A stretch of DNA of 64,000 bases from Syncephalis fuscata S228 (taxonomy: Eukaryota > Fungi > Zoopagomycota), in the NCBI GenBank assembly GCA_025786725.1, contig JAHLTZ010000030.1, positions 1-64,000 on the forward strand. Direction: 5' to 3'. Every line of letters begins with the position of its first letter. Position 1 is the first letter of the stretch. The notes below the pieces were generated by a model. It worked only from the letters and a program-made list of their open reading frames with translations, had not been told where the DNA came from and ran no database searches. The translations under genes were made by a program, and so were the position numbers. Shown piece by piece: positions 1-59,464 of this stretch.

Positions 1-2559
1 CAATATAAGCCTACACAAATACTAACCAAAAGTATGTTAATTAATCAGCTATTTAATGCATAGTCAATTGTTAATTGTTAACGTTAATTTATATAGTAAT
101 GACTGGCCATTAGAAACTGTTGTCGTTTTTGCTAGCCATAATAACTAATTAGCAGTACCGTAATATATTATTAATTAAAAAAGATCAGTAATTAATGTTA
201 CATGTAGTTGCAATGTATATGCAATACTAAATATCACATTGCTAATCATCAAGCAATGCCCTAGTCTGGCGTTGTCCTATAGTTTTAGTTTTTGATACTT
301 GCTGATAATTAACACTTATATTACTGCTTCTTAATTGTTTACTATCAAATAGGCTATTAAGCTATTTTATAATAAGTGAAATAATTATATACTGTTATAT
401 GATAAGGCCTGATGAATGCACGTTTGTCTTATTTATAGGTTATACAATCTTGATAGGCTTACGTCTTGTTGTACATGTAACAAATTTGCTATTTCACAAT
501 AAAATTTACAACTTTGGCATGCCTAGCGGCAATCTAATTACTAACGCTAAGTACGGTATCTAATGACTATAATATAGCTTAATGGACACTTCTTTATTTT
601 TGTTATTCTATTTAATAGTATTAAGTATGGTGCAGGACAAAATATTATAAGTAAACACAAACTGTAAATAATAAAAGTAATTGTTATCGCGTTTTAGCTA
701 GGTTTTATTTTCATTTGTTACGTAGCAAGTGTCTACATCTTTGTGATTTACAAATATCTATTTATAATTAGTAACCAATAACAATGACACTTACTGTTCA
801 ATGTCGACCGTGTCGCTTTATCCTTTATTCGTTCTTTTCTGTTTTTCGGCACTTTTGTTTGTCGCAGCCTTATTATTAACTAGTATATATGCCTAGTTCA
901 TCCACTACATGGCTTTATTGCTAAAGATAAATATTGTTATGCTTAACAACATTAACGTACAAGCATGTAATGTTCAGTAAACACAACTATCTTCGATCTT
1001 GTAGCTCATATTTAATAGTAATACATGCAGTCGAAATAAGCAATAACATAACATCTACACACCATTTCCAACTGTAATATATAGTATATATTATTTATGA
1101 ATAAGCAACAATTTATTCAGCCATTGCGCTACTTAAATGCCGGTTTTATTATTATAGAGACATTATGCCGTCTAATTCATTCAAAAGTAATGCAGATGAT
1201 AAACGTTCTATTTAGTTATTAAAAACTGAAAACCATTATTGTGCTAATGTTATTGTACTGCTATGCTGGCCATAATACTTTTCATAGTATTTTTGTAGAT
1301 GTAGCTGATTGCCGTAGTGGCATATACATTTGTGAAAAGTTATGTTTATTATTTCTATTTGGTTAATACTTGCTAACCATTGGATAAAATAAAGCATGAG
1401 CATGGCTGAAACAACTTAATAAAATATAATTAAACGAGCTATATATTTGCTGCAAGCTTTTGCAGTTTAATAGATATAGCTGAGCTATGACTTCTTCCTG
1501 GAATAATAAAGTTATTGACTAAAGAGGCGAATAATGCAAATCATTGATTAGGATTTGATGTTTGTATAAGCTAAATAGTAGCTGTCAAACATAGATAAGC
1601 CACTTTACATGGCTACCTATACAGCAAAGAATATATTATACTAACAATATGCAGCACGTTAATTTGTTTGCATAGTATATTGATATGCTGTAATTCTTAT
1701 ACACGCAATCACAATACCAACAGTGGCCAATAAACTTTAATATAGCCTATAATCACTCATACATTTATAATCACTATCAAATGTATCTTCTATATAATTA
1801 TATTAAAAATTAGCTGGCCACAATATCTGACATTTTTGTACCGTCTAAATACATGGCACATCATTAATTATAAGTCGGCTACAAAATTTATGCTTAGTAT
1901 TGCTTGCATAAAATAATTATCTAATGCACACCGTTACATTTACAATATTATCGTATAGTTTTATTTTAAATATAGTAAGTTTTACTGTAAGTTATCTACT
2001 ATGGCAATAAAGTATAGTATTTTACGACTAAATCGCACACAGTCGATAGCTTATCCAGTACTGTTTAAAATCAACGGTGGTTATGTATATATAACAGCTA
2101 TAACACCAATACAATTTAATGCGTAAAACACAATGGTAAGCCAATAAACCTATATGAAATAAGGTTCCGACCTGAATAACCGGCTTACAGAATTCATTTG
2201 TAAAGTTTAAAGCAAAGCATTAGGAGCAAGAATAATATGTTTAGTAAGGAGATTAAATATAGAGTAGACGTTTGCTATTAAGGATTAATATATACAAACA
2301 TAAAATAACATATTGTAATAAAAACCAAACTAAATATGATAATAATAATAAATTAAAGACTAATGGTTTATTAAAAGATAAACAAGCATAAATGTATCTA
2401 CACTAAAAATGTTGCTTATGTACTACAAATATAAAGGTAACGTATACCTTTAAGCTCTATGGTCAGTAGCAATGCATAAAATAAAATATGTTAAAAATAA
2501 TGAGAAACATAAATTATATATTATGTAGAATTTTGTCATATTCATTAACATTTTAGTAT

Positions 2560-3200
2560 AGTTTGAAGGTTAGATGACTATATTTGATAATATTTGGGCA
2601 ATTGAGCTACACTTTCGTTCTATTAAACATGGAACTGGACGATAAATGGCACCAGTCATTAAAATACTCATTATCTTAGACTTGTTACTTTGTATGCATA
2701 TATCTTTTATTCACTAGTATCATTTTCATTCTATCTCACACTACTATATACCATTTATAACATACTAGACATAATTTATTCTTCATATGTTACAATTCAC
2801 TTCGTTATTCCACCTATTGTATCGTACACGCTAAAACTTTAACTCCGAGTGCCATACTTTTTATTATATATTTATACCATTATGTATTATTTTGTGCTTG
2901 TTTAGTCAAGCTTTGTCCAAAACTGTTTTACGTTTTGTTCTAGCTTTATTATTGATATTTTTTTATTATAGTTCAATTTACACACTTGCTCATGTATAAA
3001 TGCTCTAACGCCTTAACATTGCCAATCACCATTTTGGTTCGTATATTCATTATATTGTTTATTGCTTTTTTGAATAAATAAATGCTATTCAATATCGTTG
3101 TCTATTTATTTCTAGCTATATTATTTGTAACAAAATAGCTATTCTACAGTCATTTGATTACAGCTTCGCCATGTATAGCGAATATTAAATCATTATCACT
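2560..3200 (+). mobile_element. Degenerate remnant of the TIR-module/MITE family
   Basis: 2570-2700 (atgactatattt...ctattaaacatg...aaatactcattatc...gtatgcatata) resembles the module at 4860 and 21290. 2880-3130 resembles the MITE interior at 31660-31880. Confidence 0.5.
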
Positions 3201-4859: not shown

Positions 4860-5856
4860 GTTTAGTATGATCCGGTGGTCAAATGGCTGCATTTAATAGC
4901 ATCCAATCTATTGAACATGATGATGGGTGGTAAGCGACATCAATCATCAAATACTCATTATTGTAGCTTTATTATCCAGTATGCATATATACTCTATCTA
5001 TATCATCCCCATTCTGTCCCATACTAATATATATCATTCTATGATATACTAGATACGCTCTATTGCTTATATGTTCTAATACACTTTGTTCAATTTACTC
5101 GCTACTTTATATGCACTATGACTTTAACACCGCTCATCGTACACTTGACATCGTATATTCATTTATTATATATTATTCTATACTCGTTTGCTCTTGCTCT
5201 ATTCAGACTTAATGTCCTTTTGACGCTAGCGCTATTATTAGTGAAGCTTTGCTATTTTGCTCATTCGCTTAGTTACTTATTAGTTTATCTACATTATAAC
5301 TTTAGCACTATTGGTCGCCACTTTGTACTGTATATTCTTTATTTTGTATATTGCTATATTACATATTAGCTATACGTCGCCTAGAGTCATTATCCATTTG
5401 GTTCTAGCTCTACTACTAAAACCTTGACCTATTTCACTTCTTTCTACTCATTGTATTATATTGCTAGAACAAATACTAAAAGTATGCATAGATGTATTAC
5501 TTTATTAAACGTATGTATTAGATTGATTATCTATAGCTAATCACGGCTGAATTAGCTAAAGTCAGTTAATTATGATTATAATGGTATCCAAGTCAAGTAG
5601 TGGAGCATTTATAGGAATACAAGCTCAAAAGAAAATATATTGGTATAAAAGTGAAATGGAATATGGATAAAAACCATGTAAATAGTCATAACGCAATACT
5701 GCGCAAATATAATAGGCAGATGGTGGATATATGCATACTGGATAATCAATCTACAATAATGAGTATTTGATAATTGATGTCACTCACCACCCATCATCGT
5801 GTTCAATAGATTAGATGCATTAAATACTGGTCATTTAACCACAAATCATACCAAAT
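4860..5856. mobile_element. ~1-kb non-autonomous MITE-like element with ~135-bp imperfect terminal inverted repeats
   Basis: tttagtatgatccggtggtcaaatggctgc...attatccagtatgcatatat at 4861-4990 and its reverse complement at ~5727-5856. AT-rich non-coding interior. No TSD visible. Confidence 0.75.
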
Positions 5857-20037: not shown

Positions 20038-20064
20038 GCCTAGTCATGATCGGCTAAATTCTAT

Positions 20065-21289: not shown

Positions 21290-23870
21290 TTATAATATGT
21301 TTGGATGATCAAATGACTACATATGTAATATTGGCATAATTGGTCTATATTCTTTCTAATGAACATGAATGGGTGGTGAATAACATCAGTCATCAAATAC
21401 TCATAATCGTAGATCAATTATCCAGTATGCATATATCTTCTATCCATTTATATCATTTCCATTGTATATCCATACAACTATATACTATTCTATGGTATAC
21501 AGACAATATATATTTGTTATATATATTAAATCGTTTTATTGCTTAATAAATAATATAGCTTCAATGTTGCTATTTATACTTTCTCATTGTATATTTATGA
21601 TATTCTATAACTGTATAATACATTAGATATGCGCTAGCTAAAACTGCTGTTCATTTGACACTATTTTGTTATTTATAAATATCAACTCATTTATTTTATT
21701 AAATCACTAGCAATACAATTGCGATGTTGTTATTCATTCACATGCTTATCATTCTGCTATAGAATAGACATAAACTGTTAATAAAATATTTATTGCTACC
21801 TGTATTTATAATTGACATGGAAGCACACTTCAGTATAGCTGGATGGACAATCGAGTCAACCGACTGGTGCAGATATGATTGTTTTGTGGACAAGTGTAGA
21901 ATAAAAAAGGGACTATCATCTGATCTAGTGGTGAAATGGCATCCGTGCACCAAAATGGTCCAGCCAGGCGCAATACACCAATAAACAGTCGCCATGTACT
22001 CTACCAATATTGTCCATTCTAATTGGTGGATATATTTTGGAATAAGCTTATAAGGTGTGCTGAGCGTACTTTTGCTCATTACTTCGCTTTCTCTTGTTTC
22101 TAGTTGTTAATATGCTGTAAACTGCTTGTTAATGGAAGCATCTGTTCTAGTAGCTATATCCAGTGGTGAGTGGTCTCCTTGTTGGTTGATCACGATATAC
22201 TGCGTTATGCATTTGAGCTGTGTTGAATGTAGAATACAGTAGTGCAGACTATTGTGTTATACTAGCTAGCAACTATATGGTTGCCTGTACTAGGCAGCTG
22301 TATACTGGCATAGTGTGGAGATATGTGGGATAACAGGGTGTGCAGTACTGTGTTTAGCAAGTCAGTATTGCTGTGCACTCCCCTCATGTTGATGCGGCGA
22401 CCCGTATGGGTGGTCATATGTTAGTGCTCACTTGTATTGAACGTGCACTGGAGGTGTGTTTGATAGCCTTCAACTTGCTGAATACTATCATCGCACACTA
22501 GACTGGTGTGATATGTGGCTTATTCGTACTGAATACCATGCATTACACTGTTTACTTGTGGGTGTTGTTAAACGATTGTAATAGAACACTAGTCGCCATA
22601 CCATTTTAGTTTTCAACTGCCGTGTATTACTTTATACAACACTGACATAAACAAGGACTACGGCCGAAAACAAATGGCATCTCTACTACTATAATGTCTT
22701 AGCGTAGACTGGTTACTATATTACAATTATTTAATAACATATCAGTATTGGCGATGTGTGTTTAGTTGTAATATGTTGTGGTGTTCATGTGTTCAGCTCT
22801 AGACATCAACTACAAATGGGTGAATCCATAGTTTGGTGCAGCTTATTGCTACGCTTGAATTCCATGGCATTTTATAACATTTATTGAACAGCATCGCCAT
22901 CAAGATAGCAGCTAATATAGAGCTGTACGCATCCGACAAATTTACTTACGCCCAAGTCGTAGTATGTCGGTACTCCAGGTGGACGTATAGTTGCTATATT
23001 AGCTGCTACCTTGTTTAACAACTTTTAACAACATTTCTAGTTTATTTGTATAACAATAACAACAATACACAAACAACTACACTCGTGTACACTATAAACT
23101 ATACGCAAGGAACAATCAACTAGATGTAGGTGCTTATTACTACTAAACAATACTAACGCACTTTTATTATAGCTATTCAAGCATTGGTGCCGGATCAACA
23201 AGTATATCCAAACTGCATTTGTTATCGGGCACAAATATTTTGCATGCAACTTACAATACCAACTATAGAATTCGTTGGCACAAGCATCGACAACAATACT
23301 GTATACTGTCGTTGGTACTATTGTTTGGGCTGGATTCTAAATGGGACATATACTTATCTGGTTTATATTACCCAACACTAACTGGCATTGCTATTGCGTA
23401 TCTGCTAAATGTTTTGGTTTGATTGAAGTGGTGGTAATAAAGAGGGAGGTGGTGGGCATTACACATATATTACATTGAAATGGTAGATTTAATAAAGAAG
23501 CGCATGAGGTGTTTGCTGAATCGACATAACACTGTGACTCCATTACTAGTTTGTCTAATGTTGTGCTTATTATGTTTAATAAAACTATAATACTGGTACA
23601 TGTATTCAATTAAAGTCACTGATACTTGAATGGCTAGATTACAAGTAGCTACATTCAATACTGCATCTACGCCAACTATTTTAATAATAGTGCCAATGAT
23701 TTATTTATTGCTGTGTTATTTATTGCCATTTAACATGATCCAGTGGTCAAATGGCTGCATTTAATAGCATCTAATCTATTGAACATGAGTGATGGTGAAT
23801 GACATCAATCATCAAATACTTATCGTTGTAGATTCATTATCCATATGCATATATTCAGTATACATATAGA
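21290..23870 (+). mobile_element. Cassette A copy 1: TIR module + ~2.3-kb non-coding body + second direct TIR module (23728)
   Basis: Near-identical to 28874-31450, 44818-47390, 60790-63360 and the reverse complement of 38180-40753. The same short ORF translations recur in the ORF track. Confidence 0.85.
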
Positions 23871-24599
23871 ATTTTATTATATACTCAGACTATATATATT
23901 ATTCTATCTTTGGAAGTTATTAGTGCATAGCAGTCCAATCATCATGCTACTAAACTCGCTGCATGCTTTGGTTTGCCATAGATCACCACTGCAGTCGTTT
24001 TAAAAGTAGTAGTAGATTGCACTTTTAGTACGGCCACTGAATAACATTTCAGTACCATCAGTGCGATCTACTACTGTCGCTACTGTATATGCTATTACCA
24101 GCACGATCTATAGTGGCAATCTATAGCAAATCAAGGCATACAGTAGCTTTGGCAGCATATGGTCGCTACATTCGTCGTACTGGCAGTTGTGCATATACAA
24201 TAGCGTAATCTGCAATGATCCATAGCATAAACAAAGTGTACAACGAGACTTCACAGCATATGCTCAAAATAACATAAAACAAGCCAGGAATGCACTTACC
24301 GTGTCAATAAAGCTGCCAAAAGCAACGATCAGAGCAAGGAAAGTGATTTGTAAAAAAAGGTTAGATTACAAAAGAGCAATTCAAGTACATAAGTAAATAG
24401 TGTTTGTACATAATAGTAGACAGTCAACTACTGACACTATTTAGATGGTATATATGGAGTGTACAAATATATGGTATAGATATATGCTATCAAGTGTGAA
24501 GAAAGAGAAAGGAAATGTGATGACGTAGATTGTGAGCTGTGAGTCTGTCAGTCAATATTTATAAACAGCCGAGTTTAATTCATTAATAAATGGAGTGTA

Positions 24600-24860
24600 A
24601 ATAATAAAAGTCAATCTACCCAACATGTCGATACATCATAGAACAGATTAATAGTAAATGAACAAATGCATTGAGAATAAAAGTTATTTGACACCAAAAC
24701 TACTCATTATTATAGAACATATACTCAGTATATTAAAAGATCAATTAAATATAATAAAAGTCATTTACACCCAAAAACACTCATTATCATAGAGGTGTTT
24801 GTCAGTATAATAGCGAATGCATTAAAGAATAAAAGTTAATTAATACTAAAAGTCAGTGTA
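24600..24860. repeat. Degenerate ~75-bp tandem repeat x4 downstream of the kinase (also 56510-56760)
   Basis: aataaaagt(c/t)a recurs at ~24603, 24676, 24753 and 24828, the middle units continuing ...cacc.aaaa.actcattat.atag. Confidence 0.7.
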
Positions 24861-25040
24861 GTACAATACATATCAACGGTTACTACATTATAAAGATGAA
24901 CAATGGCTTACATATTAAATAGAATAAAAATAATAGTATTTATTTATAATATATAAGTAATTAATGTACATACAAGATGAGACAACTATGCAGTATGATT
25001 AGTATTGTGATTTGTATAATTGTTAGTAAGTACTTACCTT

Positions 25041-27403
25041 TTATTTAGCATTCTTTTTGCTAAAACGGACCTTGCGAGGTGGCAGACTCCCTTTGTTTTT
25101 GACGCACAATGTCTTGTATTTGGAATAACGGATGCGTTTTGGACTGCGGGTTGGAGGACTAGGTGCTATATGCCGCCGTGTTCCTGTTACCCGTGGTGGC
25201 GATACACGTGCTGGTGCTGGTGCAACAGCTACTGCTGGCGTGACCGGTGGAGCTGTTACCGGTGTAGTAGCTGTTGCTGTTGGTGGTGGAGCTGTTACTG
25301 GTGTAGTAGCTGTTGGTGGTGGTGGCTGTAATGCTGGTGGTGGAGGTGGAGGTGGAGGCGGTGGTGCTGGTGCTGATCCATTGTTGAACCAAGAACAGTT
25401 CAATGCCTGGGCGACGGTATACCGTGTGGTACTATCTAGATCTAGTAATCCTTCCATCAATTGAATGGCTGCAGTGTATTAGTTAATGTTAATAAAAAAT
25501 ATATAACTTACCTTGATTACTTAACCCGTTGATTCTTCCCCGGCCAAATGTGGGCGGATTCTGTAGTATACGCCTCATATACATAGATTGGGTCTTTACT
25601 ATGCTATATGGGCAGCGTCCTAATTAACAGTATTAAACAGTTAGTATTTGCTTTTGTTTTTGTTTGCACTTACCCAGTAACATCGTATGGAGCGTTGCTC
25701 CCAAGCCCCACATATCGGCGGGCTTTCCATACCCCTTAGCATTCAACAATGCTGAAGGTAGCCGATCTTTGGCCCCAGGCATGCTTTTGATGATATCCTC
25801 CATATTCTCCCGCCTATTAGTTCCCAAAGCACCTCAGGTGCCATGTAGGCAACTGTGCCGCAAAAAGTGGTCACAGTTAGTGAAGGAGGGAGAATGCATG
25901 CCATCCCAAAGTCTGTAAATACGACTCTGGGACCCCCCTGGCCACCAAACAACAGCATGTTGTCGGGCTATTTAAATGTTAGCAATAATTACAAATATTT
26001 AATAAATACTTACTTTGATATCTAAATAACAATAGTAATAATAGTAATAATAGTAATAATAGTGATTAGTGATTATATTAATTAATAGGTTAATGTATTT
26101 ACCACGATGAATGATATTCATGCTATGAAGGTGCTAATAAATGTTAGTATTTTAATTATGTTTTATACTAGTACTTACTTGAATACCTTCAAGCAGCTGT
26201 TTAAAGATATATTTTGCTTCCATCTCTGGAAGTGGGGCTTTTGAGACGATGTGATTAATTAGATCACCGCCTGTTGCGTACTCAAGAGACAAGTACGTGT
26301 TCAGGGCGGTGACCGTACCATCTAAAAAGCCTATTACGCCAGGGTGTTACCCACCGCACGTAATGTGGCGACTTCATTATTGAAGCTTTTAAGGCCGCTT
26401 CCTTTTGATGATACTTTGACCGCAACACGTTCGCCTGTGCTGCGGTCAAATCCCATGTAGACTTGGCCAAAAGCGCCCCTATTATAAATAATTAGTAGCT
26501 AATTAGTTAGTTTAGTTTATTACTTACTCTCCAATGGGCTTATCAACAAGCATGAACTTCTGGTTGATTTTCTATAACATTAATAAAATAATATTAGCAA
26601 TATTTAAATATAATTGTAACTTACCTTTTCGTATCTTTGCTGTCTTCTATTTTTACAGGCTTATAATGTTTAATGATGTAGATATTAAACGTTACTGCCA
26701 CGCATAATTAGAAATAATCATAAATAATCACTTGTCACTTACTATTGTGGCCAGGTATTGTGACAACACAATCACCAGCAAATCTTCTTGATCCATGGCA
26801 CCCAATTCAATCATTAACTAAAATAATTGTTAGTAAAATAATTACTATTACTTGTTAAACTAACCCATTAAAACATCTAGTTCAATGTTCTAAATCACTA
26901 ATTAGTATTAATAATGTTAAATGCCCATTTACTTACTTTGAATGTAATAAAACCATTTGACTATAATAATTCATAATTAGTACCCGTTTATCAATGCAAA
27001 TATTATACTTACTACTAAAAATTTGAAGCATTGATCTGGCAAAGATGCAGTGGCCAGGCGGACATTGCTGTTTAAATGTGTATGATATTAGCTTATTGTT
27101 TATATATTACTTTAAATAATTACCAGCCTTGATCGGACCCAACAGTATAGCTCTTATTTTTTATTAACAGAATTTCTAAATAAACACTAATTAGATATAT
27201 TTATATTTAGTATTGTTTAACTTACTTTTAGATCCTGCCTCATGGATTCTAACCCATGCAATGGTGTTAGTACGTACGTGCATAGATAGATTGTTCCAGA
27301 TTTCTGGAACGTTATAAAACATCAAATCCTCATTGCTTAGAAGATTCAATGGCTGTTGAACAGCAACAGCAGCTGGAGCAGTTGGGGCGGAAGTAGAAGA
27401 CAT
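25041..27403 (-). pseudogene. FHA-like + CAMK-group Ser/Thr kinase copy 1, frameshifted as assembled
   Basis: Same exons as 56948-59322 but with small deletions: cccaaagc vs cccaaaagc (~25825), gggtgttac vs gggtgattac (~26347), gtatcttt vs gtactcttt (~26633), and VNG to VND* (~26810). Confidence 0.75.
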
Positions 27404-27544
27404 TTTTATAAAGTATAAAATAAAAATAAGTAAATGGGTAAATTTCAAGTTGAAAGTTATGAACTGGAAGTAGAGCTGTAGAAAAAGTAAGGCAAACAAT
27501 TATGTGTATTGCTCTTTCGTTTATTTAAATATTTACAGCATTAT

Positions 27545-28090
27545 AGTATCAATTAATGTTGAAGCCAATGCCACAATTGCAATCAGTATTCTAAGAATCA
27601 TCAGAATGCAAATCAGCGTGGAAGGCAATACAGCAATGCCAACTGATATTCTAAAAAGGTATAATACCAATCAGTATTCTAGGAAATATTGTAATGCCAA
27701 CTAGCATTGGATGCAATGTCACAACACCAACCATTATTCTAGGAAGCATTGCAATGCAAATCAGTATTGAAGACAAAGCTACAGTGCCAACCAGTATTTT
27801 AAAAAAAGCACAATGTAAATCAGTATGGAAGGCAACATTACAATGTAATTTTTTATTCTAAAAATATTACAATGTCAATCAGTACTGGATGCAATGTTAG
27901 AATGCCAACCAGTGCTGAAGATAATGTTATGTTGCCAACCAGTATAGAAAGCATTGCCACAATGTAAATCAATATTTTAGAAAATATTGCAATGTAAATC
28001 ATTATTGGCTGCAATGCTACAATGCCAACCAGTATTCTAAGAAATAGTACAATGCCAACCAGTATTGAAGGTGATACAAGAATAACAATG
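27545..28090. repeat. 30-bp minisatellite (~18 degenerate units) just upstream of the kinase start
   Basis: acaatgccaaccagtatt / gcaatgtaaatcagtatt recur every 30 bp. Confidence 0.85.
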
Positions 28091-28873
28091 TAGGCAAACA
28101 ATGCTTTTAAAAGACACAAAGAGCCCATGTGGATAAATGGTTTATTTTTAGTGTAGCAAACAGGCAAATTAATAGCCAACAATCAAAGCGCCAACCGCAG
28201 CAAATAAAGAAATAGCTACAAATAAACCATTGATGCCATTGAATGTTACAACACAAAGAAAAGACTAACAGCGTGCTGCAGACTTTATAGTGACAGTGAA
28301 ATAAGGGCGTTGTTTTGCATGATGCATAGTAGCATCAAAGTATTGTTCTTAAATGGTGCAGAATGGCATCAGATTATTGGTTCCAGGCGATGCAAGTGGC
28401 AGCAAACTATTGTTCTTGAATACCATTTTGCGTCATCATATTGATACAATATTGCAAATAATGACAATGACAGCAGAACATTGTTCCTAGATAACACAAA
28501 ATGGTATATCATTGATACAGTCATCCAAATACACAGTTTATTTGTTTAAAAATAGAACATTTGGAGCAATGCTTTGTCTTATTCAAAATATGGCATTCTA
28601 TGGCCATAAGCTGAACTAGAAACTATACCAGGAACTGGGTAATTAGCTTTTATCGCCTTTGTATGCTGTAGGCTAAACGAAGTCTATCTAGAAGAACGGC
28701 CATACATATAATAATTAACACTTGTAAACATATTTTAGCAAGCTGAAAAGAATATGTTTTTATTTATCAACATCTTAAGCTATCTTATACACCAGTTCAA
28801 GTAGTTATGTACAAATAGATTGGTAAAATAAATAGTAAAATAAATAAATATAACATTTTTGCAAACATTAACC

Positions 28874-31800
28874 ATTTAGTATGATTTAATGGCCAAATGA
28901 CTACATCTAATAACATTTGTTTTATTGAATATGAAAATGGGTGGTAAATCATGCCAGGGTCCATAATACTCATCATCGTAGATCAATTATCCAGTATTCA
29001 TATATCCTCCATCCATTTATATCATTTCCATTGTATATTCATACAACTATATACTATTCTATGATATACAGACAATATATATTTGTTATATATATTAAAT
29101 CGTTTTATTGCTTAATAAATAATATAGCTTCAATATTGCTATTTATACTTTCTCATTGTATATTTATGATATTCTATAACTGTATAATACATTAGATATG
29201 CGCCAGCTAAAACTGCTGTTCATTTGACACTATTTTGTTATTTATAAATATCAACTCATTTATTTTATTAAATCACTAGCAATACAATTGCGATGTTGTT
29301 ATTCATTCACATGCTTATCATTCTGCTATAGAATAGACATAAACTGCTAATAAAATATTTATTGCCACCTGTATTTATAATTGACATGGAAGCACACTTC
29401 AGTATAGCTGGATGGACAATCGAGTCAACCGACTGGTGCAGATATGATTGTTTTGTGGACAAGTGTAGAATAAAAAAGGGACTATCATCTGATCTAGTGG
29501 TGAAATGGCATCCGTGCACCAAAATGGTCCAGCCAGGCGCAATACACCAATAAACAGTCGCCATGTACTCTACCAATATTGTCCATTCTAATTGGTGGAT
29601 ATATTTTGGAATAAGCTTATAAGGCTGTGCTGAGCGTACTTTTGCTCATTACTTCGCTTTCTCTTGTTTCTAGTTGTTAATATGCTGTAAACTGCTTGTT
29701 AATGGAAGCATCTGTTCTAGTAGCTATATCCAGTGGTGAGTGGTCTCCTTGTTGGTTGATCACGATATACTGCGTTATGCATTTGAGCTGTGTTGAATGT
29801 AGAATACAGTAGTGCAGACTACTGTGCTATACTAGCTCAGCAACTATATGGTTGCCTGTACTAGGCAGCTGTATACTGGCATAGTGCGGAGATATGTGGG
29901 ATAACAGGGTGTGCAGTACTGTGTTTAGCAAGTCAGTATTGCTGTGCACTCCCCTCATGTTGATGCGGCGACCCGTATGGGTGGTCATATGTTAGTGCTC
30001 ACTTGTATTGAACGTGCACTGGAGGTGTGTTTGATAGCCTTCAACTTGCTGAATACTATCATCGCACACTAGACTGGTGTGATATGTGGCTTATTCGTAC
30101 TGAATACCATGCATTACACTGTTTACTTGTGGGTGTTGTTAAACGATTGTAATAGAACACTAGTCGCCATACCATTTTAGTTTTCAACTGCCGTTTTTAT
30201 TAATTTTTACAACACTGACATAAACAAGGACTAGCGGCCGAAAACAAATGGCATCTCTACTACTAATAATGTCTTAGCGTAGACTGGTTACTATATTACA
30301 ATCATTTAATGACATATCAGTATATGGTGATGTGCTGTTTAGTTGTAATATGTTGTGGTGCTCATGTGTTCAGCTCTAGACATCAACTACAAATGGGTGA
30401 ATCCATAGTTTGGTGCAGCTTATTGCTACGCTTGAATTACCATGGCATCTTGTAACATTTATTGAACAGCATCGCCATCAAGATAGCAGCTAATATAGAG
30501 CTGTACGCATCCGACAAATATTACTTACGCCCAAGTCGTAGTATTGCCGGTACTCCAGGTGGACGTATAGTTGCTATATTAGCTGCTATCTTGTTTAACA
30601 ACTTTTAACAACATTTCTAGTTTATTTGTATAACAAATAACAACAATACACAAACAACTACACTCGTGTACACTATAAACTATACGCAAGGAACAATCAA
30701 CTAGATGTAGGTGCTTATTACTACTAAACAATACTAACGCACTTTTATTATAGCTATTCAACCATTGGTGCCGGATCAACAAGTATATCTGAACTGCATT
30801 TGTTATCGGGCACAAATATTTTGCATGCAACTTACAATACCAACTATAGAATTCGTTGGCACAAGCATCGACAACAATACTGTATACTGTCGTTGGTACT
30901 ATTGTTTGGGCTGGATTCTAAATGGGACATATACTTATCTGGTTTATATTACCCAACACTAACTGGCATTGCTATTGCGCATCTGCTAAATGCTTTGGTT
31001 TGATTGAAGTGGTGGTAATAAAGAGGGAGGTGGTGGGCATTACACATATATTACATTGAAATGGTAGATTTAATAAAGAAGCGCATGAGGTGTTTGCTGA
31101 ATCGACATAACACTGTGACTCCATTACTAGTTTGTCTAATGTTGTGCTTATTATGTTTAATAAAACTATAATACTGGTACATGTATTCAATTAAAGTCAC
31201 TGATACTTGAATGGCTAGATTACAAGTAGCTACATTCAATGCTGCATCTACGCCAACTATTTTAATAATAGTGCCAATGATTTATTTATTGCTGTGTTAT
31301 TTATTGCCATTTAACATGATCCAGTGGTCAAATGGCTGCATTTAATAGCATCTAATCTATTGAACATGCTAGTTGATAGTGAGTGACATCAATCATCAAA
31401 TACTCATCGTTGTAGATTCATTATCCAGTATGCATATATTCAGTACACATATACTTTATTCACCTATATCATTCTATTTTATTCTATAATGATATATACC
31501 ATTTTATAACATACTAGACACATTCTATTGTTTATATGTTTCAATATACTTTATTCACACCACTCATTATGCTATACACACTATAGCTTTGACATCGTTT
31601 TATATGCTTTCTCACCGTACATTTACCATTTTATATACTATTCTATACTCGCCTAGTCTTCCTTTATCCAGAACTGCTTTTATGTTTGTTCTAGCTTTAT
31701 TATTAATAAATCTTGACTAATTCTGCTCATTGGTCATGCATATATTTTCAACAACTTTGACACTACTAATCGTCACTTTAGTTTGGATATTCATTATACA

Positions 31801-32167
31801 ACTTTATTGATTTATTACACAAGAGCTACGAACCGACTAAAGTCGCTGTCCGTCTGGTTCTAGCTGTATTATTGATAAAGCTTAGTTCATTTACTCGTTA
31901 GTCTATATATACTTGAGATTTATAGCAAATGGGCTGTCTACTATGTGATATAATGATATATAGTAGTGTGGAATAAAATGGGAATGATATAGGTGAATAA
32001 AGTATATGTGTACTGAATATATGCATACTGGATAATGAATCTACAACGATGAGTATTTGATGATTAATGCCATTCACCACTCATCATTATGTTCAATAGA
32101 TTAAATGTCCACTTCAATTATGCAAATATTATATATGTAGTCATTTGACCACCAGATCACATCAAAT
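28874..32167 (+). mobile_element. Composite element: TIR> cassette A copy 2, TIR> (31309), ~0.5-kb interior, <TIR (ends 32167)
   Basis: Starts atttagtatgatttaatggccaaatg. 31309-31490 and 31970-32167 are ~180-bp inverted repeats. Same layout as 44818-48090. Confidence 0.85.
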
Positions 32168-40773: not shown

Positions 40774-41265
40774 CAAAATTTATAATAATATTAAATGACA
40801 CACAATATGTCAATTCTGTATTGCATCTTTAAATAATTAATTGTAATTATAATATATTGATATCTGTGGCGAAAAATATGAATTGCGTGGTGCAATAACG
40901 CTACACACTGCCGTATTTTATGCATAAATAAAGATATACTGTATTCATTATTTAAATTTGTTTTATTAATGTATATCAGTACTTGTGAGTATTATCCTGA
41001 CCCCCTCCCCAATAATAAAGACACAACAATTGGTGGAGAACCTGGGCATGCTCCCATTCTTTCTCCACCGTCCATTAACAATGGTGTTGCAATTTAAATA
41101 TATACATCACTTTTCAATTTTGTCTTGCTCAATTAATCCAATCAGCTCATATGTGACGGTGCTTGTTATGCCAATTGTATATAATAACGAGTGCGGTATT
41201 AATATGAAAAACGTTTAATTTACGCCTTTTCCTGTCATCAAATAAACTGTTTGTTACACATAACA

Positions 41266-41430
41266 CAGCAATGGTGCAGCGTTATCATTTCCAATGCCGC
41301 GACGATGTTCCATCGTGAGTCGGTATTCTTGTAACTTTAAGGACCAACGACCAAGTTTACCAACTGGCTTAGGCCAGGACATTAGCTAGCGCAAAATCGA
41401 ATAATCAATGACAATGGTAAAGGATGGCTA
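41266..41430 (-). pseudogene. Ty3/Gypsy retrotransposon RNase H C-terminal relic
   Basis: Translates FTIVIDYSILR*LMSWPKPVGKLGRWSLKLQEYRLTMEHRRGIGNDNAAPL, matching the Gypsy RNase H end pattern (F.i.TDH..L.W....grL.RW.l.LqEy.f.i.hr.G..N..AD.L), with one stop. Confidence 0.8.
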
Positions 41431-41967
41431 CATGCCCGGACTCTTCACCAACTGTGGTGTCATTGTTATCAGGGGTCGGGATAGCGCACACAATTTCTGA
41501 TAAAACAAATTCAAATAATAGAAAGGACTTATTTTTATTTCAAATGCTGGGTGCAATATGACTCTATTTATACGTAAAAGCAGGCAGTGTGCGAGATCAT
41601 TGCATCATGTGGTTTATATCTGTCATCATAAATATACCACCTTTTTTCTACTGCCTTTAAGCATCATTCCTTGTTATTGCTGTTTTCGTCCTACCCCTTT
41701 GTTCCTTTTTGTTTTACATTTTGAATGCCATCTTTTAATATTACATTTTGTTACACAACTTACGCAGGTCATCAATATTGAATGACATATTACAGTCAAA
41801 CAAATAGAGCAATATAATTATATATAAACCAAACTGAAACAGTAATGACGTAATTTTAATTCAATCTACTGTTGTGAAGCAATTCATTTATAAAACGCAA
41901 TAAAGCTAATTTTCACGCAATTATCACTTGATTCATCTTGTATACTTTACTGTTTTATTCGTTCAAT

Positions 41968-42225
41968 ATGCCACTGAATATCGATGCATTGCGTAAAGAG
42001 ATGGCGCAACAGCCACCTTTCCATGACCAGCCACCGCCAATGCCTACTACTGCAAACAATAACCAATCTGATGCAACTAAGCAAGTTAAAGAGTGTGTCA
42101 AACAGGCCGTCGACCAAGATACAGCTAAAGAGGCTTCTAACACTGCCAATAAGGCAAGCACAACTAGTTCAACGATTGCAGATAAGCTAGTGCCATCAGC
42201 ATCGACGACAGCTTCAAAAAAATAA
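41968..42225 (+). CDS. Small hypothetical hydrophilic protein (~85 aa)
   Basis: ATG-initiated ORF with coding-like composition between AT-rich flanks; no recognised motif. Confidence 0.5.
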   Translation: MPLNIDALRKEMAQQPPFHDQPPPMPTTANNNQSDATKQVKECVKQAVDQDTAKEASNTANKASTTSSTIADKLVPSASTTASKK

Positions 42226-42413
42226 ATACTTCTATTTCTTCACATTATTATAATCATTATTAGACAATTAATCACCTAATTACCATCAGACCTTTATTGT
42301 TGATTATCATTGACTTTTTGAAACTGGTGTTTATTGGTTATCATTGACTGTTATCGCTTTTCGTTCACTAATATTACTATTCTTACGTACCTTTTACTTG
42401 CATCTATTCAAAC

Positions 42414-44730
42414 ATGCTGGATCATTTCACAATCTTCACTCGAGGCGGTATAGTTCTGTGGTCGAGTTCCTTCTCACCGCTACAAAGCAATCCAGTAGAT
42501 GATCTGGTACGCGAAGTATTAGTGGAGGAGCGTACAGGACAACGGGCTTTTGAAAGTGGCTCTTATACCGTACAGTGGACGTTGGCCAATGAACTGAATC
42601 TTGTCTTTGTAGTAGGTTGAACCTGTATATACCTATATCTATACAGTTGGTCTAACTACTAGTGTTATCAGGCAGTTTACCAAAAGATTCTACAGTTAGC
42701 CTATGTAGAAGATTTGTTACTTGGCGTACGACGGGCATTCACCGACATGTTTTCCGACATTTTGGTTAGCTGCTTAACCATCGTACTGCCACAAGATCAG
42801 TTTGCCAAATTCGATATTAAATATAACAATATTACGCGGAAACTAGAGGAACGAGAGTATTCAGTAAGTATATAAACCCATAGTACTGTGACACTGATGT
42901 TTATTATCACTAGTCTCGTGCCACCAAAGCACCGCGTCGATTTGAGGAAACTAAAAAGTATCAGAATACATTGGAAGCATCCCGTGGTAAAGGTAATTAG
43001 GCTTTAATAGAATATTCAATTGTTTATTAAATGGTGTAGGCAAAAAGGTCAATACAAGTGCATCCAGCCATGCATCTGAAACTAATGACGATGAGGACGA
43101 ACAAGTCGGTGTGGATTCACCAAGAGTACAGAGACATGGCAAAGGAAGACGTGGTAATAAGGATAAACCCAAAAAGTAAGCTAATCAATATTTACTGGCT
43201 ATATTTGTTTATAACGAGCGACGATAGAGAATCAAAGAACTCAGCACGTAAGCCACGAGTATGGGATGACACGTATAATGAAGAACAAGCAAAAACACTT
43301 GATTTTAGCGGTCAAAGTGATCTTACGGCAAATAATACGATTGATGCAGAGCGATTGGTAAGTGCAATAAATGGTAATGTTGCCAATAATATTGATGTAT
43401 TTCGATAGATTGATCGATCAGCATTGGGTGAACAAATATCGGGTGGCATATACAATGTTCGTACTATGGGCAATTCCGACGACGAAGAGGATGATGATGA
43501 TGACGACGGCCATAATGAAGCTGGACCAAGTGGTATGATGTCATTCTTCCAACGTATTACTGGTCAAGCGGCGGTGACTGAATCGGATTTGGCACCAGTG
43601 ATGAGAGCAATGAAAGAGCATTTAGTTAATAAGAATGTTGCAGCTCATATTGCTGACCATTTGTGTGAATCTATTTCTAGCGGTATTGTAGGTCGTCGAC
43701 TTGGTACATTCAAGAGTAGGTTTATGGCTCAATGGTCTACCTGACAACTAATATTGTTTGGTGATGTAAAGGTGTAAAGGCAGAAGTGAAGCGACAAATG
43801 GAGACGGCAGTAACTCGTATTCTTACACCACGTACTTCACTCGATGTACTACGTGATGTATTTGCCGCTCGTGATGAGCATCGCCCTTACACAATGGTGT
43901 TTGTCGGTGTCAACGGCGTTGGTAAATCGACCAATTTGTCAAAAACATGCTTCTGGCTACTTCAAAATAAGCTTAGCGTGCTTATTGCTGCGTGTGATAC
44001 ATTTAGATCAGGTGCAGTAGAACAGCTGCGTGTACATGCACGTAATTTGTGTGCACTTGAAAAGACGGCCCGTATTGAATTGTATGAACGTGGCTATGGT
44101 AAAGATGCGGCAGGTATTGCCAAAGATGCCATTAGTTATGGTAAGTTTTAATTTATCAATAGATTAGTACCGACTAAAACACAATTATTAATGTAATGTA
44201 TAATAGCCAAGGCCAATAAATTCGATGTAGTTTTGGTGGATACAGCAGGACGTATGCAAGATAATGAACCATTAATGCGATCCTTGTCCAAGGTAGCTTA
44301 TTTAATCATATTTGTTGGTGTAGTGTTTACTAATCATGGCCTATAGCTTGTCAGTGTCAATAATCCTGACAAGATTATATTTGTAGGAGAAGCATTAGTG
44401 GGTAATGAGGCTGTCGATCAATTAACTAAATTCAATCAAGCATTAAAAGACTTCTCTGGACTACAGCATCCGCGTCAAATTGATGGTATTATATTAACAA
44501 AATTTGATACTATAGATGATAAGGTATGCTTTACATTAATGCTCTAGCTATTTAATATTGACTATTTGTTCTGACTAACACGCTATTGTTATTGCTATTA
44601 GGTTGGCGCTGCATTGTCAATGACATTTATTACTGGTCAGCCTATTCTATTTGTTGGCACTGGTCAAACTTACACCGATCTTAAAGGCATGAATGTGCCA
44701 CATGTAGTGCAATCATTGTTACGTGATTAA
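42414..44730 (+). CDS. SRP101: Signal recognition particle receptor alpha subunit, multi-exon
   Basis: [16 protein letters not shown] longin start; [61 protein letters not shown]. Confidence 0.96.
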
Positions 44731-44797
44731 ATACCATTAATAATTGACGCGACAGAAATTAAAAAATAGTAATCGTTGTAGTTAATCTTGGCTTTCT

Positions 44798-47700
44798 TTT
44801 ATAAATAAACACAAATGATTTAGTATGATTTAATGGCCAAATGACTACATCTAATAACATTTGTTTTATTGAATATGAAAATGGGTGGTAAATCATGCCA
44901 GGGTCCATAATACTCATCATCGTAGATCAATTATCCAGTATGCATATATCCTCCATCCATTTATATCATTTCCATTGTATATCCATACAACTATATACTA
45001 TTCTATGATATACAGACAATATATATTTGTTATATATATTAAATCGTTTTATTGCTTAATAAATAATATAGCTTCAATGTTGCTATTTATACTTTCTCAT
45101 TGTATATTTATGATATTCTATAACTGTATAATACATTAGATATGCGCTAGCTAAAACTGCTGTTCATTTGACACTATTTTGTTATTTATAAATATCAACT
45201 CATTTATTTTATTAAATCACTAGCAATACAGTTGCGATGTTGTTATTCATTCACATGCTTATCATTCTGCTATAGAATAGACATAAACTGCTAATAAAAT
45301 ATTTATTGCTACCTGTATTTATAATTGACATGGAAGCACACTTCAGTATAGCTGGATGGACAATCGAGTCAACCGACTGGTGCAGATATGATTGTTTTGT
45401 GGACAAGTGTAGAATAAAAAAGGGACTATCATCTGATCTAGTGGTGAAATGGCATCCGTGCACCAAAATGGTCCAGCCAGGCGCAATACACCAATAAACA
45501 GTCGCCATGTACTCTACCAATATTGTCCATTCTAATTGGTGGATATATTTTGGAATAAGCTTATAAGGCTGTGCTGAGCGTACTTTTGCTCATTACTTCG
45601 CTTTCTCTTGTTTCTAGTTGTTAATATGCTGTAAACCGCTTGTTGCTGAAAGCATATGTTCTAGTAGCTATATCTAGTGGTGTGTGACCTCCTTGTTGGT
45701 TGATCACGATATACTGCGTTATGCATTTGAGCTGTGTTGAATGTAGAGTACAATAGTGCAGACTATTGTGTTATACTAGCTCAGCAACTATATGGTTGCC
45801 TGCACTAGGCGGCTGTATACTGGCATAGTGCGGAGATATGTGGGATAACAGGGTGTGCAGTACTGTGTTTAGCAAGTCAGTATTGCTGGCACTCCCCTCA
45901 TGTTGATGCGGCGACCCGTATGGGTGGTCATATGTTAGTGCTCACTTGTATTGAACGTGCACTGGAGGTGTGTTTGATAGCCTTCAACTTGCTGATACTA
46001 TCATTGCACACTGGACTGGTGTGATATATGGCTTATTCGTACTGAATACCATGCATTACACTGTTTACTTGTGGGTGTTGTTAAACGATTGTAATAACAC
46101 TAGCTACCATACTGTTTGATTTTCGACTGCGTTACACGAAAATTAATTTGACTGACCGAAGGTCCTCTGCAATGGCGACTGAAATAGAATTGTAGCTCTA
46201 CTATCGATTGTATTGTAGAGAAAGCTAGCAGTTATTCTACAATCATTTAATGACATATCAGTATATGGCTATGTGCTGTTTAGTTGTAATATGTTGTGGT
46301 GTTCATGTGTTCAGCTCTAGACATCAACTACAAATGGGTGAATCCATAGTTTGGTGCAGCTTATTGCTACGCTTGAATTGCCATGGCATTTTGTAACATT
46401 TATTGAACAGCATTGCCATCAAGATAGCAGCTAATATAGAGCTGTACGCATCCGACAAATGTTACTTACGCCCAAGTCGTAGTATTGCCGGTACTCCAGG
46501 TGGACGTATAGTTGCTATATTAGCTGCTATCTTGTTTAACAACTTTTAACAACATTTCTAGTTTATTTGTATAACAAATAACAACAATACACAAACAACT
46601 ACACTCGTGTACACTATAAACTATACGCAAGGAACAATCAACTAGATGTAGGTGCTTATTACTACTAAACAATACTAACGCACTTTTATTATAGCTATTC
46701 AACCATTGGTGCCGGATCAACAAGTATATCTGAACTGCATTTGTTATCGGGCACAAATATTTTGCATGCAACTTACAATACCAACTATAGAATTCGTTGG
46801 CACAAGCATCGACAACAATACTGTATACTGTCGTTGGTACTATTGTTTGGGCTGGATTCTAAATGGGACATATACTTATCTGGTTTATATTACCCAACAC
46901 TAACTGGCATTGCTATTGCGCATCTGCTAAATGCTTTGGTTTGATTGAAGTGGTGGTAATAAAGAGGGAGGTGGTGGGCATTACACATATATTACATTGA
47001 AATGGTAGATTTAATAAAGAAGCGCATGAGGTGTTTGCTGAATCAACATAACACTGTGACTCCATTACTAGTTTGTCTAATGTTGTGCTTATTATGTTTA
47101 TTAAAACTAAAATACTGGTACATGTATTCAATTAAAGTCACTGATACTTGAATGGCTAGATTACAAGTAGCTACATTTAATACTGCATCTACGCCAACTA
47201 TTTTAATAATAGTGCCAATGATTTATTTATTGCTGTTTTATTTATTGCCATTTAACATGATCCGGTGGTCAAATGGCTACATTTAATAGCATCTAATCTA
47301 TTGAACATGCTAGTTGATAGTGAGTAACATCAATCATCAAATACTCATCGTTGTAGATTCATTATCCAGTATGCATATATTCAGTACACATATACTTTAT
47401 TCACCTATATCATTCTATTTTATTCTATAATGATATATATCATTTTATAACATACTAGACACATTCTATTGTTTATATGTTTCAATATACTTTATTCACA
47501 CCACTCATTATGCTATACACACTATAGCTTTGACATCGTTTTATATGCTTTCTCACCGTACATTTACCATTTTATATACTATTCTATACTCGCCTAGTCT
47601 TCCTTTATCCAGAACTGCTTTTATGTTTGTTCTAGCTTTATTATTAATAAATCTTGACTAATTCTGCTCATTGGTCATGCATATATTTTCAACAACTTTG

Positions 47701-48090
47701 ACACTACTAATCGTCACTTTAGTTTGGATATTCATTATACAACTTTATTGATTTATTACACAAGAGCTACAAACCGCCTAAAGTCGCTGTCCGTCTGGTT
47801 CTAGCTGTATTATTGATAAAGCTCAGTTCATTTACTCGTTAGTCTATATATACTTGAGATTTATAGCAAATGGGCTGTTTACTATGTGATATAATAATAT
47901 ATAGTAGTGTGGAATATAATGAGAATGATATAGACGAATAGAAGATATATGTGTATTGAATATATGCATACTGGATAATGAATCTACAACGATGAGTATT
48001 TAATGATTGATGTCATTCACCACTCATCATCATGTTCAATATATTGAATATTATTAAATGTAGCCATTCAATCCTCATATCATACTAAAT
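44798..48090 (+). mobile_element. Composite element: TIR> (44818) cassette A copy 4, TIR> (47250), interior, <TIR (ends 48090)
   Basis: Same layout as 28874-32167. The right end catatcatactaaat is the reverse complement of the left end atttagtatgat. Confidence 0.88.
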
Positions 48091-50390: not shown

Positions 50391-50773
50391 ACTTTAAAAT
50401 ATATAAAAGAGGAATTCAAACTATGTAATAAAACGAACTGCAAATGGTTTTGTTTTTTAACAAACAAAAGCGATGATCAATCACTGTTACCATCTTAACT
50501 TGTTATTACCATATTTAGAACAATAAATTATTTGGTTCCCACATTAAGAATCATAGCTGTATATATTTGCCATATTCCAGGCGTTTTTTACTTGTGCAAA
50601 ATGTGGTTATACAACTAATTAATTTCTATTATCAATAAAAAATATCCAAGACCTTCTTACATCATTACACACATTATATTTTATAGCTGCATCACAGTTA
50701 ATTGCTATTATTATGCTTGTTATTGTAACGATTGTTACTAGGTAGCACTTATTATGGTTTTATTACAATTGTA

Positions 50774-50882
50774 TCTACAATGATGAGTATTTGATGCCTG
50801 ATGTCATTCACCACCCACCATTATGTTCAATAGGTTGGATGTTATTAAATACTAGCCATTTGATCACCAAAGTGTATTAAAT
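50774..50882 (-). repeat. Solo copy of the TIR module
   Basis: tctacaatgatgagtatttgatg...atgttcaatag...gccatttgatcacc is the reverse complement of the module. Confidence 0.75.
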
Positions 50883-54479: not shown

Positions 54480-55769
54480 GTTGGTATAATCACAATACCA
54501 CATCACCAACGGTGCTGATCTGTTTTATAATCACTGTTTGCATATTGTTACACTTTTTATTTGCTTGTTTTTTTTATTTGACGTTTAAAATGTACAAAAA
54601 AATACATTCTGACGTTTATTTCACTGTTTATAATCTTTTTTAATTTTTTTTCATTGCTACAACAGTATGTACTTTAAATGGTGATTAGCTTTTCTTTTCC
54701 ATTTCTATTGCATCTTATCAACATGGCATCGTTGTTTGCTTTTAAATAAATAGTTTATATCGGTGATTATAGTTGCAAATATGCAGTGTTTTAATTATTG
54801 TCTAGCTATTTTGGTATATTAATATAACTTATAATATAATGAACTCGATTTGGTTTTATTTTACGTTAACTCCCACATTTGAGTCAAAGCAAAATTTGTT
54901 TCAATAGAAGTCATACTGTTATGCACAACAAGCATAGGTATAATGTTCATTACTACTTTGCAATTCACAGGGCCTATCATTTTTGCTGTTGGCTATGCGT
55001 AGAAAGATTGATCGAATATTAATAGAAGCCTTATGGCTGCAATTCCATGGCATTCCGCATTTGCTGTTGTTATATCTACGTACAGTGTGGATTATTGCAT
55101 CTGAGTGGTCTTTTTTATTTTCTAATATTCTAATATTGCATTTTGAGCATATTTGCGATGTAAAATCAATATTAATATAATTATTATAAATGTTGTTTAT
55201 TAAACAGCTACTTCCCTTATAGCTAATCTGACTAAGTAAAAGACATTTTGAACAATTAATATCCTAATTATAATATATATATATATGTTAAAGTAATAAT
55301 AAAGATAACTAATTAATTACATTATTGTATTGATAATTACACATGAATCAATTAATGTTGGATGTAATATTATACATGTTATAGTAATGAGTAAATGTTT
55401 AATTGTATTTAAAAGTAAAGGAGTGAAGTAAGTAAATATAAATGTAGGAATCAACATACAATAACTTATATATACTAATTAATAGACTCATGTAATTTAG
55501 TGTCAAAAGACCAAAATTGACATCCTTTACTTGATTGAACTACACATTTGTTGTTCTATTAAACATGGTGATAAATGGCGAGTGACATTAAATAATCAAA
55601 TTGTAATGCTTTGAATACTTTATAACAATAATAATATGGATCAACATTTATTTATTGCTATAATTTATTTATTAGTTATACTATAATAATAAATCACAAT
55701 AGTTATTGATATAATATTACTCACCGCTCATTATGATTATATATATTAACATGCACTAGGATATAGTCT

Positions 55770-56180
55770 GTATGCCATCAAAGCTGTTATATACTTTGAT
55801 TTGCTTAGATTGCTAACATAGTCATTGCACTGACTGCTGTATATGACGAATGTGGTGACCAAATGCTACTAAACTCGCTGCATGCTTTGGTTTGCCATAG
55901 ATCACCACTGCAGTTGTTTTAAAAGTAGTAGTAGATTGCACTTTTAGTACGGCCACTGAATAACATTTCAGTACCATACAGTGCGATCTACTACTGTCGC
56001 TACTGTATATGCTATTACCAGCACGATCTATAGTGGCAATCTATAGCAAATCAAGGCATAAGTAGCTTTGGCAGCATATGGTCGCTACATTCGTCGTACT
56101 GGCAGTTGTGCATATACAATAGCGTAATCTGCAATAATCCATAGCATAAACAAAGTATACAACGAGATTCACAGCATATG
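55770..56180. repeat. Foldback (long imperfect inverted repeat) built from ~85-90-bp subunits; truncated copies at 23944-24262 and 63444-63762
   Basis: 55826-55912 pairs with 56029-56113. Inner agtagtagattgcact pairs with agtgcgatctactact, and actgaa pairs with ttcagt. Confidence 0.75.
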
Positions 56181-59322: not shown

Positions 59323-59464
59323 TTTTATAAAATATGAAATAAAAATGAGTAAATGGGTAAATTTCAAGTTGAAAGTTATGAACTGGAAGTAGAGCTGTAG
59401 AAAAAGTAAGGTAAACAATTATGTATTGCTCTTTCGTTTATTTAAATATTTACAGCATTATAGT

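Follow-up and report, generated by a model that had tools for sequence, protein, structure and literature searches.

The first 64,000 nt of contig JAHLTZ010000030.1 (assembly GCA_025786725.1) from the early-diverging mycoparasitic fungus Syncephalis fuscata S228, referred to here as the window, contain arrays in which a protein kinase gene is paired with a structured non-coding RNA (ncRNA) gene and in which copies of a repeat module, T, recur at the edges of duplicated blocks. T is the end of an abundant family of elements resembling miniature inverted-repeat transposable elements (MITEs). The kinase-ncRNA pairs have probably been duplicated, exchanged and inverted by recombination within T copies and not by a new cargo-carrying transposon. 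We infer that homologous recombination or synthesis-dependent strand annealing (SDSA) was at work, and not a transposase. The contig of the window is labelled C224 in the following, and the other contigs compared with it are C357, C319, C113, C35 and C328. An earlier reading of the same stretch from its letters, called the original prediction below, had proposed that T serves both as transposon end and as recombination joint and that it amplifies a captured kinase gene as cargo.

Anatomy of the arrays

Self-BLAST of the window reveals a block A of about 2.5 kb, present five times with 95–98% identity, and a block B of about 4.9 kb, of which there are two copies with 96–97% identity and a third, truncated one starting at 63444. 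Together they form a 7.5-kb unit that recurs at 23944-31453 and 55863-63365 (96.4% identity), and the predicted period of 7,581 bp is recovered as the distance between the B starts at 55863 and 63444. When self-BLAST was combined with a profile hidden Markov model (HMM) of T, the predicted orders of modules and blocks were found again (arrowheads give the direction of T and m is the interior of a MITE-like element). Array 1 (21293..32166) reads T1'> A T2'> B T1> A T2> m <T3, in agreement with the order T>A T>B T>A T>m<T given for 21.3–32.2 kb, and T>A T>m<T is present at 44.8–48.1 kb. Array 2 (55498..64000) reads degenerate T> R-left B T1> A T2'> B', which corresponds to the predicted T>B T>A T>B from 55.5 kb with a degenerate first T; its B' is truncated at B position 784, just past the window end. 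The sequence that borders array 1 on the left (18500-21270) has no second copy in the genome. The same system includes a partial copy in inverted orientation at 37920-40773, which is absent from the earlier description.

The five copies of A, all delimited by self-BLAST, lie at 21396-23868 (copy 1, + strand, 98% identical to copy 2), 28965-31453 (copy 2, + strand, used as the reference), 44909-47394 (+ strand, within a kinase-less composite at 44798-48089), 60881-63365 (+ strand, array 2) and 38178-40662 (− strand, within the inverted arm 37920-40773). Copy 1 of B (23944-28870) consists of a repeat, R, the kinase gene and a lineage-specific upstream region, and copy 2 occupies 55863-60790.

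The T module and its MITE-like family

The profile HMM was built from ten T copies and matches were kept at E ≤3e-5. It finds 17 T modules in the window, in line with the approximately 17 copies counted originally, with starts on the + strand at 2552, 4861, 21293, 23729, 28875, 31310, 44819, 47251, 55498, 60791 and 63222 and on the − strand at 5855, 32166, 38321, 40752, 48089 and 50881. The length of 130–180 bp first assigned to the module proved too short, as T measures about 235 bp and an outer motif of about 22 bp (consensus TTTATAAACAATTTATTA) lies beyond it in many copies. A 19-nt core, ATTATCCAGTATGCATATA, occurs 13 times with at most two mismatches against 0 occurrences expected by chance. 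Since conservation is broad, spreading over T positions 21–135, the idea of a uniquely conserved core was softened. Named copies on the + strand are T1' (21293..21539), T2' (23729..23964), T1 of array 1 (28875..29108), T1 and T2' of array 2 (60791..61023 and 63222..63464) and the degenerate T upstream of B copy 2 (55498..55601, E 3.4e-5; placed at about 55495 originally). A solo T lies at 2552..2805 on the + strand and a truncated solo T at 50771..50881 on the − strand.

T modules form the inverted ends of three simple elements of the type T>m<T, as had been proposed, with arms that are 84–88% complementary. These are a free-standing element at 4861..5855 (arms 4861-4999 and 5855-5718, 85.7% complementary), the element T2> m <T3 that closes array 1 at 31310..32166 (31349-31520 and 32107-31935, 87.9%) and the element at 47251..48089 (47272-47461 and 48068-47876, 84.5%), all recorded on the + strand. 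They are 860–1,000 bp long and their sole open reading frame (ORF) encodes 60 aa of no known family. The 29-Mb genome holds 136 scored matches and 989 first-look candidates of this family; of the roughly 1,000 T loci some 45 were read individually, as were about 12 units of kinase and A. The T>m<T elements share terminal inverted repeats (TIRs), small size, lack of coding capacity and many dispersed copies with MITEs.

The statement that no transposase and no target site duplication (TSD) are visible in the window was borne out by a domain search of the large ORFs and by a TSD offset scan. No recurrent direct repeat was found at end offsets of 0–44 bp in 10 elements, for which the exact terminus is uncertain given the outer motif beyond T, and no transposase or recombinase domain was detected in the large ORFs of the window, the rest of the genome not having been searched. 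Helitrons have 5'-TC and CTRR-3' ends and a 3' hairpin and lack TIRs. The ends of the present elements read ATTTAGTATGAT and its reverse complement and are long TIRs, and assignment to Helitrons was rejected. A site-specific cassette system of the integron or Crypton type was also rejected, as no recombinase domain was found within the same limits.

On contig C357, T1 carries a GC-rich insertion of about 320 bp (L035:829-1148, corresponding to C357 20829-21148) that is absent from the window copy. It is flanked by a 19-bp direct repeat, CTACATCTAATAACATTTG, and resembles a short interspersed nuclear element or retroposon; a 90% identical copy lies at L022:1226-1495, and neither ARAGORN nor Rfam reported anything in the insertion.

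Identity switch points within T

The composite T1> A T2> m <T3 of 3.3 kb is found on the + strand of the window at 28875..32166, at 44798-48089 and on the minus strand of C319 (L042:3747-7008), and a fourth, partial copy lies on C35. The flanks of the three sites are unrelated to each other and that on C319 is single-copy. Copies that arise by Pack-MULE-like transposition are expected to share termini and 9–11-bp TSDs. Here, the interiors of the 28.9-kb, 44.8-kb and C319 composites are 95–100% identical (100% for the T2-m part of the two window composites), whereas the outer 100–250 bp or so of their bounding T modules are 40–80% identical, as is usual when unrelated T family members are compared, and no TSD was found. 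Termini that differ while interiors match are the opposite of the trace expected from cut-and-paste transposition. Such mosaic identity is the expected trace of homologous exchange, or of break repair that copies T>A T> into a resident T.

The changes from high to low identity recur in two zones of T, around its 19-nt core. One, at about T positions 100–118, is used in T1' of array 1, in T1 of C319, in T1 of C113 and in T3 of the 44.8-kb copy. The other, at about positions 140–150, separates T2 from T2' (31453 being equivalent to 23868) and is seen also in the C35 copy (at 31450) and in a copy on C113 that lacks A. T1' at 21293 is chimeric, with a left part of about 100 bp that is 74% identical to T3 and a right part that is 91–96% identical to T1. 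From these switch points it follows that each A cassette runs from inside one T to inside the next, with the core ATTATCCAGTATGCATATA at both ends. At no fewer than four unrelated sites, recent A copies (95–100% identical) are enclosed by T modules.

The tandem junction is likewise inside a T module. Upstream of B copy 2, R extends further to the left, as in solo copies of R, but at the A>B junctions its left part is absent and T2' directly adjoins R at 23944. T2' matches T2 as far as about position 145 and is unrelated to it beyond that point. Counting the window and C328 together, there are four such A>T2'>B junctions, with 92–94% identity. All T modules within the arrays are on the + strand, so that same-orientation repeats are present at both breakpoints, as tandem duplication by non-allelic homologous recombination (NAHR) requires. 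One half of the dual role originally ascribed to the module is thus supported, as chimeric T copies and recurring switch zones point to a recombination joint; transposition of the composites is not, as no TSD was found and termini differ.

T is a frequent joint and not the sole one, since one exchange edge on C328 lies inside A: the 3' part of A is 98% identical to the window, its 5' part 83% and the kinase exon 67%, and identity of 93–98% extends from the 3' part of A across T2' and into R. Two inverted kinase-ncRNA arrays on this contig (L047 and L048, C328 690.5–700.5 kb and 781–790 kb) show an apparent recent ectopic exchange. When empty sites were sought in the assembly, the left flank of array 1 and the flank on C319 each matched only themselves and hence the assembly holds no empty allele for them. 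Host sequence is enclosed by inverted ends, as A lies between T1 and T3 at 28875-32166, 44798-48089 and on C319; the kinase gene is so enclosed only if a whole array is counted as one unit.

The kinase gene and A form an ancestral head-to-head pair

The intron-rich kinase gene predicted for one of the cassettes was confirmed. It lies in B on the minus strand, has at least five exons and, when searched exon by exon, matches Pfam Pkinase with E values of 4e-16 and 4e-14. Among solved structures, its exons are nearest to kinases of the CAMK group (MARK, AMPK, Chk1). Copy 2 (56948..59325, − strand) has open exons and encodes a CAMK-like Ser/Thr kinase. Copy 1 (25041..27406, − strand) has two frameshifts in the window contig and its counterpart on C357 (L033:1030-3496) has both exons open, so that the frameshifts of copy 1 are either allele-specific, marking a pseudogene, or consensus errors.

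Throughout the genome there are at least 62–72 candidate copies of A and about 70 exon matches to the subfamily of the B kinase. Of 44 listed A cores, 28 stand head-to-head with a paralogous kinase exon at a distance of 2.0–3.3 kb, and those without a kinase partner belong mostly to a young subfamily (≥95% identity). In the units that were read (L039 and L043 to L050), the order is R, kinase (pointing left), A and T, and a further T often precedes R, giving T>R-kinase-A arrays. In eight old units, no T separates the kinase from A; in old units T follows A and precedes R. T1 is found only in the lineage of the window and its relatives on C113, where it stands in place of about 600 bp of the upstream part that A has in old units. 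This fixed head-to-head linkage indicates that A and B are one old two-gene unit, and the head-to-head pairing of kinase and A, present at no fewer than 28 loci, is ancestral. The view of the kinase as captured and amplified cargo is therefore not borne out, the pair being ancestral and the eight old units lacking an intervening T. For the same reason the module does not mark every cassette boundary: it is missing from the kinase/A joint of these units, and cassette boundaries away from the module are what the original prediction had itself named as counting against it.

R corresponds to B positions 1–1100 (23944-25044 and 55863-56950), lies downstream of the kinase gene and forms a dispersed repeat family of its own, for which the genome holds 375 first-look candidates. 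It has neither TIRs nor a folding signal, and its interpretation as a TIR element or a structured RNA was rejected on these grounds. Its left part is palindromic (24008-24075 and 24078-24205) and internal direct repeats of 75–77 bp lie at 24674-24851. Degenerate tandem-like repeats of about 100–140 bp occupy 27669-28070 and 59585-59987, within the lineage-specific segment that runs from the kinase start to T1.

A is non-coding and has a conserved structure

The original prediction had left cassette A anonymous; the absence of a shared ORF together with folding tests identifies it as a structured ncRNA gene. Among eight A copies that are 72–98% alike, a six-frame comparison of ORFs found no open frame common to all, 1-bp indels are frequent within blocks conserved at about 90%, and substitutions show no 3-nt periodicity. 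Nine ORF pieces from A gave no Pfam match. An Rfam search of the window at gathering thresholds returned nothing and a tRNA search found none.

The conserved structured core lies at 29520..30110 on the + strand. The + strand of 29560-30100, folded as a single sequence, reaches −190.6 kcal/mol (z −4.9) and none of 100 dinucleotide shuffles was as stable; for the − strand of the core z is −1.45. The consensus fold of ten A copies has −139.8 kcal/mol on the + strand versus −61.6 on the − strand, and 14–19 of its pairs show compensatory changes. In a hold-out test, pairs were predicted from the window copy of A alone and scored in six diverged copies. Canonical pairing was kept in 58% of changed cells versus 41±4% with permuted partners (maximum 54% in 500 trials), and a control with slid partners gave 32–49%. 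These results show that A is non-coding and has a conserved structure on the + strand, and we infer that it is an expressed gene.

At the equivalent of window position 29902, the core of two copies only (L043 and L046) contains a GC-rich, hairpin-like insertion of about 110 nt. A relaxed Rfam search of A returned a weak match to RAGATH-6 at 30480-30659 on the − strand (29.7 bits versus a threshold of 170, E 0.21), almost certainly by chance; it overlaps a 20-bp perfect inverted repeat that is found in every A copy.

A second contig carries the segment between inverted A copies in opposite orientation

C357 (31.5 kb) matches window positions 24016-55167 with 98.9–99.6% identity and reproduces the path B>T1>A>T2>m<T3 as well as both inverted arms. 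These arms of 2.85 kb (37920-40773 and 44798-47652) are 99.8% identical and their inner edge is the outer terminus of T1. The spacer between them (40774..44797, about 4 kb), which carries a signal recognition particle (SRP)-receptor gene, has the opposite orientation in C357 and the flanks are swapped accordingly, the product expected from recombination between inverted A copies. The segment may represent an inversion polymorphism or a flip-flop, and C357 itself could be either an unplaced paralogue of this region or a second haplotype. Near-identical contig pairs occur elsewhere in the genome (C35/C193, C339/C336, C223/C16, C101/C349, C168/C17, C366/C268 and C361/C162), and the assembly seems to contain haplotigs or large recent duplications.

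Housekeeping genes adjoin the arrays, among them those for a Bmt2-like rRNA methyltransferase, a GDA1/CD39 protein, an aldo-keto reductase and a mitochondrial carrier. The Bmt2-like gene (20688-21125, − strand) starts about 170 bp to the left of array 1.

A model for the rearrangements and its alternatives

In the reading favoured here, the locus consists of local duplicates of a two-gene unit composed of a CAMK-like kinase gene (B, minus strand) and a divergently oriented structured ncRNA gene (A, plus strand), and T, with its length of about 235 bp, is the terminal module of an abundant family of MITE-like or foldback-like elements. The T downstream of the ncRNA gene belongs ancestrally to the unit and to the spacer that separates tandem units, and the second T between kinase and ncRNA gene (T1) is confined to this lineage. 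Because T copies are numerous and have a nearly invariant core, they can be regarded as homology patches. Unequal exchange or repair synthesis between them would have duplicated the 7.5-kb unit in tandem, and the ncRNA gene, with or without the adjoining MITE interior, would have been placed into resident T or MITE copies elsewhere, which would have given rise to the kinase-less, T-bounded copies at 44.8 kb and on C319, C113 and C35. Inverted copies made in this way would then have flipped the 4-kb SRP-receptor segment. A more far-reaching version, which we consider rather unlikely, makes T with its 19-nt core a genome-wide landing pad, the core-to-core cassette being copied into any of about 1,000 T or MITE copies in a homology-driven, transposase-free manner. 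Copying might then proceed through loop-out of a circle and its re-integration or through break repair templated on T>A T>, and the same process might amplify and invert neighbouring genes, including the fast-diverging kinase family.

Several points weigh against recombination within T. That switch points concentrate near the core may in part be an effect of where differences are visible, given that T is conserved over positions 21–135, and a true transposition could have been followed by overwriting of the outer T halves. The right part of T2' matches solely other copies of the same junction; as its parent was not found, the tandem junction is not proven to be a reciprocal product of two T modules. 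The tandem copy numbers are apparent values, read from assembled contigs. With respect to the ncRNA gene, column-shuffle z-scores are inflated, since a control with coding exons of the kinase also gave z −8 (repeat R, −0.5). They were rejected as proof of structure after this control, and the structural claim consequently rests on strand asymmetry, dinucleotide shuffles and the hold-out pair test.

In the model put forward originally, T is a true transposon end, and composites up to the 10.9-kb array 21293-32166 are cut and pasted with the kinase as cargo in the manner of Pack-MULEs, by a transposase encoded elsewhere. The bounding of both the array and the 3.3-kb unit by inverted T modules, the abundance and MITE-like nature of the T family, the unrelated flanks of three composites and the coincidence of the inner edge of the inverted arms with the outer T1 terminus are in its favour. 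This model is nevertheless improbable, given that 10 elements show no TSD at any offset, that terminal T halves are 40–80% identical compared with 95–100% for the interiors, that the linkage of kinase and A is older than T1, that genome searches with A and B revealed no second copy of the 10.9-kb array and that no transposase was seen in the large ORFs of the window. Ordinary segmental or tandem duplication, with T at the edges through prior presence or later insertion and without a causal part, is an explanation that we regard as unlikely. It would account for edges outside T (37920/47652 in m, 55863 and the end of the third B in R), for the C328 tract with edges inside A and inside the R part of B, and for the ancestral position of T after A. 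It does not explain why six of about nine independent junction types fall in T, which makes up about 6% of the window, why the same two zones of T switch at independent loci, or why the kinase-less A copies are flanked by T.

There is very little likelihood that the arrays or their copy numbers are assembly artefacts created by mis-joining of near-identical repeats or of two haplotypes. The assembly does contain many near-duplicate contig pairs, and both ends of C357 lie near B copies, as would be the case if an assembler broke at repeats; however, the copies are 2–5% apart and thus not collapsed duplicates, the path B>T1>A>T2>m<T3 is found again, independently, in C357 together with the two inverted arms, and the A>T2'>B junction is present four times in the window and C328 at 92–94% identity. 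It is similarly very improbable that A is a non-autonomous transposable element with a preference for insertion upstream of this kinase family. At some loci A is indeed 83–91% identical between units compared with 66–68% for kinase exons at the nucleotide level, but in other unit pairs A and exons have diverged equally (76–78%). Moreover, 28 loci have A in a fixed orientation and at a fixed distance; at the edges of A the old units have no termini in common, and their homology continues into the 5' region of the kinase gene; and the strand-specific RNA structure points to a gene.

Recombination within T would mean that, in 64 kb of an early-diverging mycoparasitic fungus, one abundant miniature-transposon end underlies tandem duplication, dispersal of an ncRNA gene and inversion of a segment with an essential gene, and the T repeat is tied to a large, unexplained family of pairs of kinase and structured-RNA genes. 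If dispersal is homology-driven, it provides a clear example of gene movement via MITE "landing pads" without transposition, and the young T-flanked copies are natural experiments that part the ncRNA from its kinase partner. If the rearrangements are unrelated to T, they amount to ordinary repeat-rich duplication.

Comparison with known systems

A literature search returned nothing on repeats of Syncephalis. As with Pack-MULEs, Pack-MITEs and other transduplicating TIR elements, a host-derived ncRNA gene (A) lies between inverted non-autonomous TIR ends at several unlinked sites. Unlike in Pack-MULEs, no TSD was found and termini are not common to the copies, the cargo is a whole ncRNA gene and not exon fragments, and carriage of the kinase appears unsupported by the sequence. 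The young subfamily of A is flanked by T and separated from its kinase.

The arrays resemble products of NAHR or unequal crossing-over mediated by Alu, MITE or Ty repeats in that the duplicated units lie between direct T copies and T modules at the junctions appear chimeric, and in that inverted copies flank a segment with opposite orientations in two contigs. They differ in that the parent of one junction half was not found here. The insertion of a 2.4-kb gene into single resident repeats is also unlike a reciprocal crossover and comes closer to repair synthesis. SDSA or gap repair with template switching at transposon ends is the origin of internally rearranged Ds and P elements. In the present case a break or excision that started the events would have to be presumed, and the resemblance lies in a new sequence that is bounded inside the repeated end and in an outer end that remains that of the recipient.

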